DNA of 64,000 nucleotides from the sequence record OQ790161.1, one strand, 5' to 3'. Shown piece by piece: positions 27,174 through 54,152 of the stretch. The position numbers and the translations under genes were made by a program. Under the pieces are notes generated by a model. That model searched no databases. It worked only from the letters and a program-made list of their open reading frames with translations, and had not been told where the DNA came from. The first letter of the stretch is position 1; every line of letters begins with the position of its first letter.

Positions 27174-30100
27174 TTAGGTCGTCACGACCGTCGGGTTCTC
27201 ACGGCTGTACGCCTCGACCAAGATCGGGCGGAGACGGCCGTTGCGCTGGGACTGATACATCACACCGTTCCAGTCGCTGAAGTACAGACGGTTGGGGCGA
27301 ACCAGCGGGTTGTTGAGACCCAGGTAGGTCATTTCCCACGCCGAGCCGTTGTAACGGTAGAAGCGCTGCTTGTCGTTGTCGGCGGCGATGCCCGTACGGA
27401 CATAGTCACGGTAACGACGCGGACGGGTCAGCACCTTGAAGGTGACCTTGGGCTGACGCACGGAGATCACACCCCACGTGGTGGGACGATCCACCAGCGG
27501 TGCCAGGGCCGGAACAGCAGTCAGGTCGATCACCACGCGAGCGGTGGTCGGGTAGGTGGTTGCACCGAACTCGGACACGTCCACCGTGATGATGCTGCCT
27601 GCACGCACAGCCTTGATGCGGACCTTGCCGGCGGTGTTCCAACCGTTGCCCGCGTCCACGAAGGTTGCCGGGTCACGTGCATCGTTGGGCACATCCGTGT
27701 CGGACCACATCAGCGAGCCGTTCTTGGAACCCAGGTCCACGCCATCGGCTTGACCGATGTGGAGTGCGACCGTGTGCAGCTTGTAGGCGAAGCTGGAGGG
27801 TACGCCTTGGACCTTGGTCAGGCCGCCGGGGGTACGCACCACAGCGATCGATACCGGACGGTTGGCGATCGTTGCCGAAGCCACGATGACACCTGCGCCG
27901 TTAGCCTTCAGATCCGTCGAGCTCAGCTCCACCTCGATGGTGTAGTTCAGCGATGCTTCGTTGGCCAGCAGCATTGCGTTGCCATCCACCGTGTCGGTGT
28001 CCAGCAAGATGCCGGCGTTGGTTGCATCCCAGCCCCACTTGTCCAGGATCGGCAAGTCGTTGTAGAGCCAGTTGGAACCTTGTGCCGAATACGGAATGAA
28101 GCTACCGTAATCCTCACGCAGGTTCTGCTCGATCGCCTGGACCTCGGTCTCTTCCGCAGCCGAACTGGCCACCGACACCCACTCCACCAGCGAACCGTTG
28201 AGCTGCTCAGCGTTCTGCGTGTTGGGCAGTTCACCGTAGGGCAGATCACCGAAGTACGCACGCTGACGCGCGTAGGGCGGCAGGTTGATGGTGAGGTAGT
28301 TGATACCGGTCGGTTCAGCGTCCAGCACCGTATTGGTGTTGGTGAAGAACTTATCGCCTTGCGAGACAGCGGCCACCGAGATGGGCTGACGACCCGACGG
28401 GCCACGTGCGAAGACCTTCAGTTCCGTACCGCCGGAGACCGGAGCGGTGGTGTAGCCGAAGCTGACCACGCGGCTGTAGTTCTCCACTTGTGCAACGACG
28501 GTGGAGAAGGACAGGTTTCGCAGAGCGATACGCAGCTGGAAGGACGGGGAGGCGCCATCGAAGGCCGACTCACCACCGGTCACATTGGCGACCAGATCCG
28601 GCAGAGGGTTGGTGGCGATGTTGGCGGGGATGACCATCGTACCCAACAGGGTCCACGTGTCGGTCGCACCGGCCACCGGGGACGGATACACTTCCACGCT
28701 CTTGGCATTGCCGATCACTTCAGCGTAGGTCTTGCCATCGAGCTTGCTCGAGTCAGCAGCCTTGGCCGTGCTGCCCAGCTTGCCTGCCAGTGCGGTGTCC
28801 ACCTGTGCGGTGGTGTAAGCGCCGACCTGTGCAGCCGTGGTGTTGTGCGGATTGCTCGTGCTGGCGGCGTGCTGCGCGTAGGCATCACCCACCAGAGCCA
28901 TCACCGCTGCCTTCGTACCGGCCGGGGTCACGTACAGGTTACTGGCCGTACCGGTCACGGTCTGGGCATTGGTTGCCGTGCCGTAGTTGTTGACCGAACC
29001 CAGCTGCACCTGATCCTTGGTCACTTCGTGCGGGTTGGCCAGATCGGCCTTGTGCGCATTCAGTGCCGCCGTGGCATCACCGCCGCCACCACCGCCGAGG
29101 GCATCGAACAACGCCTTGGTGGTTGCCGGGGTCATGAACAGGTTGGTCGCCGTACCGGCAGTTGCCTGCTGAACGGTCGCCGTGGAGAAGTTATCCACGT
29201 TACCCAACTGCACTTGCGCCTTGGTGGTGCCGTGCGGGTTGGAGCTGTTGTTCAAGTGCGACTGCAACGAGTTCCCCACCAGCGCGGTGATCGCTTGCGC
29301 GGTGCGCAGGGGCGTCATGTAGCGGTTGGCGGCGGTACCGGCTTCCGCTTCAGCTTGGGAGGCGATGCTGTAGTTCTGCACACTGCCCAGCTGGATCTGC
29401 GCGGCCGTCACGTTGTGCGGGTTGGCCATGTTGTCGATGTGCTCGGTCACGCCTTGCAGCGCGATGGCAGTGATCGCTTCACGGGTCATGGCCGGAGTCA
29501 TGTACAGCTCGTTGCTGGTACCTGCACGAGCCGCCACGACATCGGCGATACCGTAGTTGAGTACGCTACCCAGTTGGACCTGTGCCTTGGTCACGGCGTG
29601 CGGGTTGTCCACACGCGCGATGTGCGCGTCCAGACGAACGCCCACCAGTGCCTGGATGGCATTGGCCGTACGGACCGGAGTCATGTAACGGTTGTTGGCC
29701 GTACCCGCTTCCGCTTCGGCCTGCGTGGCCGGGGCGTAGTTCTCCACCGAGCCCAACTGAACCTGAGCCTTGGTGGTGTTGTGCGGGTTGTTGCTGTTGT
29801 TGACGTGCGAGTCCAGCGCATTGCCGATCAGGGCTTGGACCAGCTGTGCACCACGCAGCACCGTGAGGTACTTGGTTGCACTGGTACCAGCCTGGGCTTC
29901 GGCCACGGTGGCCACGCCGTAGTTCTCGACGTTGCCGAGATTGACCTGCGCCTTGGTGACTTGGTGCGGGTTGCCCTTGTCTGCGATGTGCTGCAGCAGG
30001 CCACCTTCACCGGAGGCAATCAGGGCGTCACGGATGCCTTCCAGCACTTCCACGACTTCCTTCATGCCCACCATGTCATCCAGGTGCCAGTCGTGATCGA

Positions 30101-52123: not shown

Positions 52124-52666
52124 ATGTCCTACTACGACGACCAGGACCTGCTGAACACAGATGACAAACGCGTCGGTGAAGCGCGTGGTGTTCTGTCGGT
52201 ACTGTTTCGACAACTCCTTGTGGTATTGAACATCGACGGCTGGATGTGGGATAAGTTGATGAGGCGCTATCTCCTCGACCCCCGCAATGGCATCCAGAAC
52301 AACTCCCGTGACCGGTCTTCGGCTCGCGGTAACCTCAACAAGGAACTCAAGCGCGACGACATGACGTGGCGTGTGTTCTTGAAGTCGCTGAACTTTCTTG
52401 ACTTTGTCCGGGTGGAGTTCTCCATCAAGGCAACGGTCAAGAGCGGGAAGTCCTACACGGTCACTGCGAAGCTGAAAGATCGCGGTCCCATCGTGCAGCA
52501 GGAACTCTTCGAGCAGGAAGACGAAGACGACCGTGACAACGGCACCGGCAATGATCCCATTGACGAGGTCGATGATCTGATGACCTCAACTCACCAGCCG
52601 ATTCGTCAACAGCAGCCCTTCTCTGCTGACGACGTCCTCAAGGCTATCAACAGCAGGCACTCGTAA
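52124..52666 (+). CDS. Conserved phiKZ-like hypothetical protein
   Basis: 180 aa, GAGAGG RBS; GVL..LFR...RSSARGNLNKEL...MTW.VF motif; acidic tail. Confidence 0.7.
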   Translation: MSYYDDQDLLNTDDKRVGEARGVLSVLFRQLLVVLNIDGWMWDKLMRRYLLDPRNGIQNNSRDRSSARGNLNKELKRDDMTWRVFLKSLNFLDFVRVEFSIKATVKSGKSYTVTAKLKDRGPIVQQELFEQEDEDDRDNGTGNDPIDEVDDLMTSTHQPIRQQQPFSADDVLKAINSRHS

Positions 52667-53391
52667 TGTCCAAAAAGAAAAACGCCCGCCTCGACTACGA
52701 CCGTGACTCCGACGGCGTGGACTACATTGCCATCTCCAGCAAAGCCCGCACCCGTCTGGGTCGGGCCTTGGCGACCGGTGGCCATCTGCCGTTCGAGCAC
52801 CGTGACTACGGTCACTTCAACTCGGTGGCAGGGCTGATCCGCTTCCTCGGAGGCGACCATCGCGAAATCAATCGCGAGATCAGTGGCGTGGAGTACGACG
52901 ATGCGATTACCGATCGTCTGGGCGACCAGTACGAAGAGGTCCTGCAAGATCACCTCCGGCAGGCACTCCATTCGCTGGCTTTCCTGAAGGCTGACATTCA
53001 GATGGCCGCGCATAACCAGCTGGACTTCATTGTCTTCCACAATGTGGATGATGATTGGGTTCAGCTGGAAAAGCCGCTGTGGTTAGCGGAGCTGATCCAG
53101 GATCTGCTCAAGTCGGTTCCCGTCCAAGGCTCCGGCCCGAAGACGTTGGATTGGGACCCGGCCGAGATCCAGGCCCCTGTTGTCCAAACGCCGCAGCGGA
53201 CCCTGCTGGAACTGCAGGCGGCGTGGTTGGAAGCCAAAGCTGGCACCAATGAAATGATTGACTTCCTGGTGTCTCAGGAAGAGTACGACAGCATCCCCGA
53301 ACATGTCCGCACCATGATGGGCGAAACGCTGAAATTGCAACGGGCTATCGACGGTACCGCCGTACCTGCGCCGCCGAAGAAGATAATGTGA
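52666..53391 (+). CDS. Degenerate paralog of the downstream NADAR-like protein
   Basis: DGVDYIAISSKARTRLGRAL...HLPFEHRDYGHFNSVAG aligns with DGIDHINIYSHARTALGQLA...HLPLRHPRYGFFASMEA. Confidence 0.65.
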   Translation: MSKKKNARLDYDRDSDGVDYIAISSKARTRLGRALATGGHLPFEHRDYGHFNSVAGLIRFLGGDHREINREISGVEYDDAITDRLGDQYEEVLQDHLRQALHSLAFLKADIQMAAHNQLDFIVFHNVDDDWVQLEKPLWLAELIQDLLKSVPVQGSGPKTLDWDPAEIQAPVVQTPQRTLLELQAAWLEAKAGTNEMIDFLVSQEEYDSIPEHVRTMMGETLKLQRAIDGTAVPAPPKKIM

Positions 53392-53477
53392 GGACAACAA
53401 CAGTTGTCTTGACGTTCCTCTTCTAGGCGACATTGAGCGCCAGATCCAACTGGCGCTTTCCCGCCAAAGTGAATCCC

Positions 53478-54104
53478 ATGTCCACCACCATCGAACCCCT
53501 GTCGCCTGATGCCCGGCCCGTTCCGGAAAACGACGGCATTGACCACATCAACATCTACTCCCACGCCCGTACGGCGTTGGGTCAACTGGCCACCAACTTC
53601 GCACATCTACCCTTGCGTCATCCGCGTTACGGCTTCTTCGCATCCATGGAGGCCTACTGGTACTGGATCAAGACCGGCAAGCAGCACGACTCCCTGCGTC
53701 GCCTGTACGGGGCCACGGCCAAGACTGCTGGCATTCGTCTCAATCCGGTGATGATGCCCGAAGAGCAGTTCGTCAACGAAATCTGCGACGGCCTGAAACT
53801 CAAGGTCGTGCAGAACCAGAAGTTGATGGAGGCGTTGAAGAAGTCGACCCTGCCCATTCGACACTACTACGTCTACGGCACCAACCCTCCGGTTGTCAAG
53901 GAGCCGCGCAACAACCTGTGGCTCTGGACCTGCCTGGAGAGCATCCGCAAGTCGCTCAAGGAGAACCGTCCGCTCTTCTTGACCGACGGTACGCCGGTCA
54001 TTGCTGATCCGATCAAGGAACCGCCGGAGAATCCGATCCCGGAAGACATCCAGCGCTACATTCCTCGTGAAGGCAGCGACGACGTCAACAACGCCGACTA
54101 CTGA
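53478..54104 (+). CDS. NADAR-like (T4 gp30.3-like) protein
   Basis: Start ATG 53478, 208 aa. LATNFAHLP...FASMEAYW..IK...LYGATAK.AG...QNQKLMEALKKS..PIRHYY resembles the NADAR pattern LSNF...F.S.E....K....G..A...G...QN.....L..; family assignment from memory. Confidence 0.55.
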   Translation: MSTTIEPLSPDARPVPENDGIDHINIYSHARTALGQLATNFAHLPLRHPRYGFFASMEAYWYWIKTGKQHDSLRRLYGATAKTAGIRLNPVMMPEEQFVNEICDGLKLKVVQNQKLMEALKKSTLPIRHYYVYGTNPPVVKEPRNNLWLWTCLESIRKSLKENRPLFLTDGTPVIADPIKEPPENPIPEDIQRYIPREGSDDVNNADY

Positions 54105-54152
54105 CCATAAGACCCCCTGCCTTCGGGCAGGGGGCTTGTGCCGTTTCTTTTT
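54105..54152 (+). terminator. Intrinsic terminator with CCATAAG / CTTGTGCCG flanks
   Basis: CCCCCTGCC-TTCG-GGCAGGGGG-CTTGTGCCG-TTTCTTTTT. Confidence 0.85.

Follow-up and report, generated by a model that had tools for sequence, protein, structure and literature searches.

A divergent phage-type NADAR and a tandem paralog without the NADAR active-site residues in the jumbo phage RTH11

Results

Xanthomonas phage RTH11 (OQ790161.1) is a jumbo phage with a genome of 312,199 bp, of which a stretch of 64,000 nucleotides, referred to here as the window, was analyzed. Two adjacent genes of this window, designated A and B, are labeled as hypothetical proteins in GenBank (Table 1). NADAR enzymes strip ADP-ribose (ADPr) off nucleic-acid bases and provide phages with a route to undo DarT1 defense. 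Gene B is an unrecognized member of this known kind of enzyme, and gene A encodes a paralog in which the corresponding active-site residues have been lost. The start of B was placed at the ATG at position 53478, which is backed by the N termini of its orthologs.

Table 1. Coordinates of genes A and B, of their domains and key codons, and of the adjacent hairpin (positions in the window; ORF, open reading frame; dN/dS, ratio of nonsynonymous to synonymous substitution rates; pI, isoelectric point; pLDDT, predicted local distance difference test)
Feature	Position	Strand	Basis
Gene A, 241-aa pseudo-NADAR paralog, WJJ55167.1	52666..53391	+	ORF, GenBank annotation, orthologs, dN/dS
A NADAR-like domain, residues 10-152, acidic, pI ~5.4, net charge -8	52693..53121	+	hhalign, VIA, BFVD/Atlas, charge
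A Ala55 codon (GCA) at the catalytic-Glu position	52828..52830	+	alignment columns
A Val123 codon at the phage-NADAR His position	53032..53034	+	hhalign mapping
A C-terminal region, residues 155-241, absent from B	53128..53388	+	conservation, model
Gene B, 208-aa divergent phage-type NADAR, WJJ55168.1	53478..54104	+	phrog_652, model, Foldseek/VIA, hhalign
B predicted NADAR catalytic domain, residues 13-165, pI 9.5, net charge +7	53514..53972	+	aligned ranges, charge
B Glu58 codon (GAG)	53649..53651	+	on AdfN Glu36, PnNADAR Glu43, YbiA Glu48
B Lys65 codon	53670..53672	+	on AdfN Lys43, PnNADAR Lys50 (phosphate contact)
B His129 codon	53862..53864	+	on AdfN His123, last-strand residue defining phage NADARs
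B C-terminal tail, residues 166-208, acidic, Pro-rich, pI 4.05, net charge -7	53973..54101	+	alignment, pLDDT 40-60, charge
GC-rich hairpin, 9-bp stem, TTCG loop, T-run ~10 nt further 3'	54113..54134	+	read from letters

B was found to be a member of PHROG 652 (phrog_652, function unassigned) with an E value of 1.7e-33. An AlphaFold2 model of B, built with 29 relatives in the alignment, had a pLDDT of 87. When this model was compared with the PDB by Foldseek, the first three ranks were held by E. coli YbiA (2b3w), the Phytophthora nicotianae NADAR with ADP-ribose (PnNADAR, 8bau) and the NADAR of Geobacter lovleyi DarG1 (GlNADAR, 8bat), with probabilities of 1.00, 1.00 and 0.93, followed by a cliff. 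The VIA-align Z scores for B were 11.7, 11.3 and 10.6, all to NADARs, and that of the next chain was 2.3. The best seven Foldseek matches in the Swiss-Prot set of the AlphaFold database were all YbiA-type N-glycosidases, which are NADARs. Comparison of the B family by hhalign with a 40-member profile of T4 gp30.3/AdfN, whose members carry PF08010 and in some cases PF08719 as well, gave a probability of 97.4% and an E value of 1e-11 over 143 columns.

The residues of the NADAR active site were located in B by alignment. Glu58, within the motif FASMEAYW (residues 54 to 61), was placed on the catalytic Glu in agreement by three independent alignments, to AdfN, YbiA and PnNADAR, and its counterpart in the E. 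coli C7 NADAR (EcC7) is E88. Lys65, seven residues past this Glu, corresponds to K50 of PnNADAR, K95 of EcC7 and K43 of AdfN, and Asn40 falls on Asn19 of AdfN in the hhalign comparison with the AdfN family. Both Glu36 and Lys43 are essential for the function of AdfN (PMC11257639), and the E. coli C7 NADAR likewise depends on its equivalent Glu and Lys. At the defining position of the last strand, YbiA carries Glu, DarG1 carries Asp and phage NADARs carry His (PMC11543638, PMC11125620). Asn40, Glu58 and His129 were invariant in all 29 members of the B family, and Lys82 was retained in 28. Judged by its modeled fold and aligned residues, B has the characters of a phage-type NADAR that lies beyond the AdfN clade and the curated models. 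An earlier note on this DNA had assigned B to the NADARs from its motif and had proposed a Foldseek comparison with NADAR and YbiA structures; the assignment is borne out by the fold, by the homology to the gp30.3/AdfN profile and by the Glu, Lys and phage-type His, and the best structural matches of B were NADARs exclusively.

The predicted catalytic domain of B is basic, as would fit the binding of nucleic acid. It is followed by a C-terminal tail that is predicted to be disordered, is conserved only within the RTH11-like clade and is absent from the relatives of about 150 residues in other phages. Possible functions of this acidic tail are autoinhibition, targeting or the binding of a partner.

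Members of the B family were detected by tblastn in 535 phage records, most of them of jumbo phages, in which frequent NADARs have already been published (PMC9503650). Among these members, one is annotated as "NADAR domain-containing protein" and another as "N-glycosidase", a label that goes back to an HHpred match to YbiA. The family is rare in bacterial genomes, with 14 loci among species representatives, on megaplasmids and on contigs of metagenome-assembled genomes. In the tree, the root was placed between the phrog_652-type clade and the AdfN outgroup, with stems of about 2 substitutions per site on either side. A metagenomic protein of 249 residues (P0038) was observed to combine a B-like NADAR domain with a C-terminal DUF4326 (PF14216, E = 1.5e-24).

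Gene A was compared with B and with its own orthologs. The earlier note had described an N-terminal block of about 50 residues common to the two adjacent genes. This block was recovered by BLASTP (59 aa, 37% identity, E = 6e-10), an E value that argues against a chance likeness, and comparison of the A and B families by hhalign extended the homology to the whole domain (98.7% probability, E = 2.5e-16, 142 columns; residues 10-152 of A and 13-161 of B). The motifs and codons that the note had read in the two genes, with Glu58 in FASMEAYW of B and Ala55 in FNSVAGLI of A (residues 51 to 58), were exact. The model of A had a pLDDT of 79. By VIA-align it matched PnNADAR (8bau) with a Z score of 6.6 over residues 9 to 154 (130 residues), the next score being 2.2, and the matches of the model in BFVD and the ESM Atlas were phage NADAR-like proteins.

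The residues of the active site were replaced throughout in A. The site of Glu58 is occupied by Ala in 11 of 11 orthologs, and that of His129 by Leu, Val or Ile, again in all 11. Asn40 is replaced by Thr37 (Thr or Ala across orthologs), Lys65 falls in a one-residue deletion, Lys82 is replaced by Asp78, which is Asp in every one of the 11 orthologs, and Ile58 and Phe60 stand in place of the two Trp of the WYW helix. In a more distant variant of A (L019/L020), the Glu site is occupied by Gly, and another, longer C terminus stands instead of that of A. The catalytic Glu, the phosphate Lys and a last-strand His, Glu or Asp are thus all missing from A, which descends from the NADARs but on these residues does not qualify as a NADAR enzyme. 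The earlier note had described the loss of the likely catalytic Glu; the loss is more extensive, with the Asn, the Glu, two Lys and the His gone and Ala55 invariant. An alternative is that A is a neofunctionalized hydrolase or transferase with a rebuilt active site, as would be compatible with its invariant polar residues (Asp12, Asp16, Ser24, Arg33, Arg59, Asp64, Arg66, Asp78, Tyr89 and Glu142) and with the purifying selection acting on it. However, every residue known to matter in NADARs has gone from A together, no alternative catalytic constellation was identified, and the nearest structures of A are NADARs only, weakly matched, so that we regard a new enzyme activity as very unlikely.

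The charge of A differs from that of B, with a net charge of the domain between -6 and -10 in most orthologs. The loss of the basic phosphate contacts, together with this acidic domain, argues against both catalysis and the reading of ADP-ribose or DNA by A and favors the binding of protein, which looks the likelier role from the residues and charge. The earlier note had included among the possible roles of A that of a reader. As an ADP-ribose reader, a dead NADAR would bind ADP-ribosylated DNA or free ADPr and shield or sequester it. A retains the fold as well as some of the N-terminal motifs (DG...T.LG...F.S), its Arg59 and Arg66 are invariant beside the former active-site helix, and inactive forms of other ADPr-processing folds serve as sensors. 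Nevertheless, this proposal is weakened by the deletion of the phosphate Lys, the change of Lys82 to an invariant Asp, the loss of both Trp of the WYW helix and an acidity unfavorable for the binding of DNA or diphosphate, and a reader function now appears rather improbable. The C-terminal region of A contains a conserved LDWD motif and helices (pLDDT 53-86), and no fold or family match was found for residues 155 to 241.

Orthologs of A are few, with identities of 34 to 80%, and the longer contigs carrying them are mostly of about 300 kb. A search over 1.84 billion representatives gave 8 clusters at E <= 1e-30, and the sequencing runs that held the A-B region were metagenomes only. A lay directly 5' of B on the same strand in 9 of the 9 loci examined (RTH11, LucasX and seven metagenomic contigs), and the tandem occurs only in RTH11, in LucasX and in metagenomic phages of about 300 kb that are related to them. 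No publication on RTH11 was found in the literature, and the LucasX paper is silent on A and B. The ortholog of A in LucasX, LUCX_333 (L004:2968-3714), is annotated as "assimilatory nitrate reductase large subunit"; nothing backs this label, which appears to be a misannotation.

The dN/dS of A against three orthologs was 0.17 to 0.22, similar to that of the neighboring genes, and 37 columns were invariant across 11 orthologs at identities down to 34%. Because of these two results, A is not considered to be decaying. Decay of a duplicate without function, with A as a pseudogene, would agree with the very long stem of A (3.74 substitutions per site) and with the loss of the catalytic residues, but it is at odds with the low dN/dS, the intact frame and the invariant columns, and with a position kept in all nine loci examined and a conserved overlap with the stop of the upstream gene; we find it scarcely credible.

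In the tree, A was monophyletic (100/100) inside the phage NADAR-like clade. The fork between A and the B clade was open in this tree and the branch was long, and an origin of A from tandem duplication of B is inferred from adjacency only. By the sequences compared, the duplication is older than the split between RTH11 and LucasX.

The best relatives recovered with the profile of A lacked the NADAR Glu in 52 of 158 cases (for example P0181, P0212, P0233, P0244, P0245, P0247, P0277 and P0297), a share that is biased upward by the use of the profile of A itself in the search. Several of these Glu-less relatives are multidomain proteins of 330 to 600 residues without a Pfam match, and one type, DGNTIFSG...S/C-Y, recurs inside proteins of 330 to 500 residues that have no Pfam domain. 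Noncatalytic domains of the NADAR-like kind may, on these findings, be common among phages.

The gene 5' of A (52124-52666, 180 aa) belongs to phrog_4910, to which no function is assigned, and gave nothing in searches of Pfam, NCBIfam and PADLOC. Its stop codon TAA overlaps the ATG of A (TAATG). An overlap of the upstream stop and the start of A is kept in related phages, with one base in L015 and as ATGA in L014 and L017, and this conservation points to a translational coupling between the upstream gene and A. The hairpin that follows B is a possible terminator closing the A-B unit, and it was not called in a consensus terminator scan. For the neighboring genes in the window no informative family was found, except a virion-structural PHROG for a gene of 756 aa.

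Outside the window, RTH11 encodes a homolog of chimallin, the nuclear-shell protein of PhiKZ (OQ790161.1, 300694-302457; 27% identity, residues 31-619, E = 8e-33), and its RNA polymerase beta subunits are split. These two features place RTH11, by its gene content, among the chimallivirus-type jumbo phages that form a phage nucleus. A stand-alone macrodomain of 152 aa, also outside the window, is encoded on the plus strand at 27349-27807 of OQ790161.1 (L007:1441-1899; Pfam Macro, E = 1.3e-8). This protein is homologous to PHIKZ104 (AdfM, anti-DarT2), with 30% identity and an E value of 1e-12. In PhiKZ, gp104/AdfM is an anti-DarT2 macrodomain that acts inside the phage nucleus.

Discussion

We propose, with moderate confidence, that B is an active N-glycohydrolase of base-linked ADPr and that A is a noncatalytic, protein-binding protein with the NADAR fold. 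As a divergent phage-type NADAR, B is probably active, judging from its model and conserved residues. It falls within the phage branch of the NADARs, the one with the His, and would most likely release ADP-ribose from a nucleic-acid base by cleaving the N-glycosidic bond. The best candidate for a substrate is guanine-ADPr that a DarT1-like toxin of the host attaches to phage DNA, in which case B would act as a counterdefense enzyme after the manner of T4 AdfN. From its gene content, RTH11 may possess de-ADP-ribosylases of both the macro type and the NADAR type; next to a homolog of the anti-DarT2 factor AdfM, a NADAR would provide the complement against DarT1.

The substrate of B could also be of another kind, and B would then be an active NADAR working on soluble ADP-ribose derivatives, such as immune signals or toxic metabolites, on ADP-ribosylated RNA, or in RNA repair. 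It has been argued that phage NADARs target mainly low-molecular-weight ADPr derivatives or by-products of RNA repair (Iyer, Burroughs, Aravind; PMC9503650), and guanine-ADPr is also removed from RNA by NADARs, and some of them remove cytidine-ADPr. In Robinsoniella peoriensis (L033:2009-3834), a B-like gene lies between genes for a Thg1-like tRNA-His guanylyltransferase and a DUF488-N3 protein. This neighborhood, which resembles one of RNA repair, hints that part of the B family has substrates other than DNA. A Pfam search of the neighbors of bacterial B-like genes and of ten multidomain Glu-less relatives detected no ADP-ribosyltransferase or DarT domain, only Thg1, DUF488 and DUF6694. The canonical Lys is itself variable, position 65 being Lys in 12, Ser in 14 and Gly in 3 of the 29 family members, and because of this variation the B family may contact its substrate or diphosphate differently from canonical NADARs. 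In contrast, removal of guanine-ADPr from DNA has been seen with every phage NADAR assayed to date, three of which counter DarTG1, the predicted catalytic domain of B is strongly basic, and RTH11 carries a homolog of the DNA-directed AdfM. A non-DNA substrate is thus possible, although we think it unlikely.

The Robinsoniella neighborhood and the variable Lys count against the favored account of the two genes, and so do several further observations. Neither A nor B had a match in Pfam, NCBIfam or PADLOC, even at E <= 10 in Pfam in the case of B, and a search of the entire RTH11 genome with PF08719 gave none. B matched neither of the curated models PF08719 (NADAR) and PF08010 (Phage_30_3), the latter being touched by one of 29 relatives of B (E = 0.019), and sequence searches of the PDB with B alone or with its family returned chance matches only. 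The phrog_652-type clade of B was distinct from the AdfN clade in the tree. The support for the fold of A is moderate, with weak Foldseek matches in the PDB and Swiss-Prot (E values of 0.097 to 1.4). One study saw no rescue of DarT1 toxicity by T4 AdfN, so that activity in vitro is no guarantee of a counterdefense role. No evidence of DarT1 in Xanthomonas hosts was found, and a literature search returned only a DarTG of unspecified subtype, in Stenotrophomonas.

In the account that we favor, A would have been born by duplication within the phage NADAR-like family and would then have diverged rapidly, losing the whole catalytic and phosphate-binding set and gaining an acidic charge and a C-terminal region, while being held by purifying selection directly 5' of B. 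In the role of a trap, mimic or adaptor, it would bind a protein, such as B, a host ADP-ribosyltransferase or some other basic partner. Any role of A as a decoy or regulator is speculation. A more specific proposal is that A and B form a two-part counterdefense module in those Xanthomonas jumbo phages that make a nucleus, in which A would be a stoichiometric trap or substrate mimic of a host DNA ADP-ribosyltransferase, or a regulator of B, and B would erase the remaining marks; we consider such a module quite unlikely. Prediction of an A-B heterodimer by cofolding gave a score of 0.00 and no answer, a result without weight on either side of the question of binding.

The use of NADARs by phages against DarT1 was established recently, and those described hitherto are all single, active enzymes. 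In the literature, no description was found of a conserved, catalytically dead tandem NADAR paralog in phages. The locus adds to this picture a large clade of phage NADARs (the 535 phage records) that was missed by curated models and, in a clade encoding the phage-nucleus shell protein, a conserved and selected tandem paralog that appears dead. If A binds a host toxin or controls B, it would show how the duplicate of an antitoxin-like enzyme can become an inhibitor or adaptor in a phage, and it would bear on how de-ADP-ribosylation is organized across cytoplasm and phage nucleus. If A does neither, B is an ordinary improvement of annotation. Should the two-part module exist, A would be the first case of a phage using a pseudoenzyme that descends from an antitoxin-like hydrolase, and since Glu-less domains recur, it could represent a wider, undescribed class of noncatalytic NADAR-fold proteins with an antidefense function.

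Comparison with known systems

T4 gp30.3/AdfN (PF08010) resembles B in being phage encoded, in its NADAR fold with a single domain core of about 150 residues, and in having Asn, Glu, Lys and a last-strand His at equivalent positions. Unlike AdfN, B is detected by neither PF08010 nor PF08719, belongs to a separate clade of the phrog_652 type and bears an acidic C-terminal tail, and its family has the WYW helix and a variable Lys; the activity and anti-DarT1 role of B are putative. YbiA, PnNADAR and the DarG1 NADAR are the sole structural matches of B (Z 10.6-11.7). The Glu and Lys of their active-site helix align with those of B, whereas the last strand carries Glu in YbiA or Asp in DarG1 in place of the His of B, and identities are 13 to 19%. 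A lacks all of the active-site residues of these three enzymes.

Closer relatives are found in other jumbo phages. The "N-glycosidase" of Serratia phage Moabite and the "NADAR domain-containing protein" of Escherichia phage Turkey3 belong to the family of B (phrog_652), with about 40 to 45% identity. Phages of the Moabite and Turkey3 type have a single copy without a partner of the A type, whereas RTH11 has the A-B tandem. In concept, B is also comparable to AdfM (gp104) of PhiKZ, an orphan antitoxin-like de-ADP-ribosylase of a nucleus-forming jumbo phage, but AdfM has the unrelated macrodomain fold and its target is thymine-ADPr.

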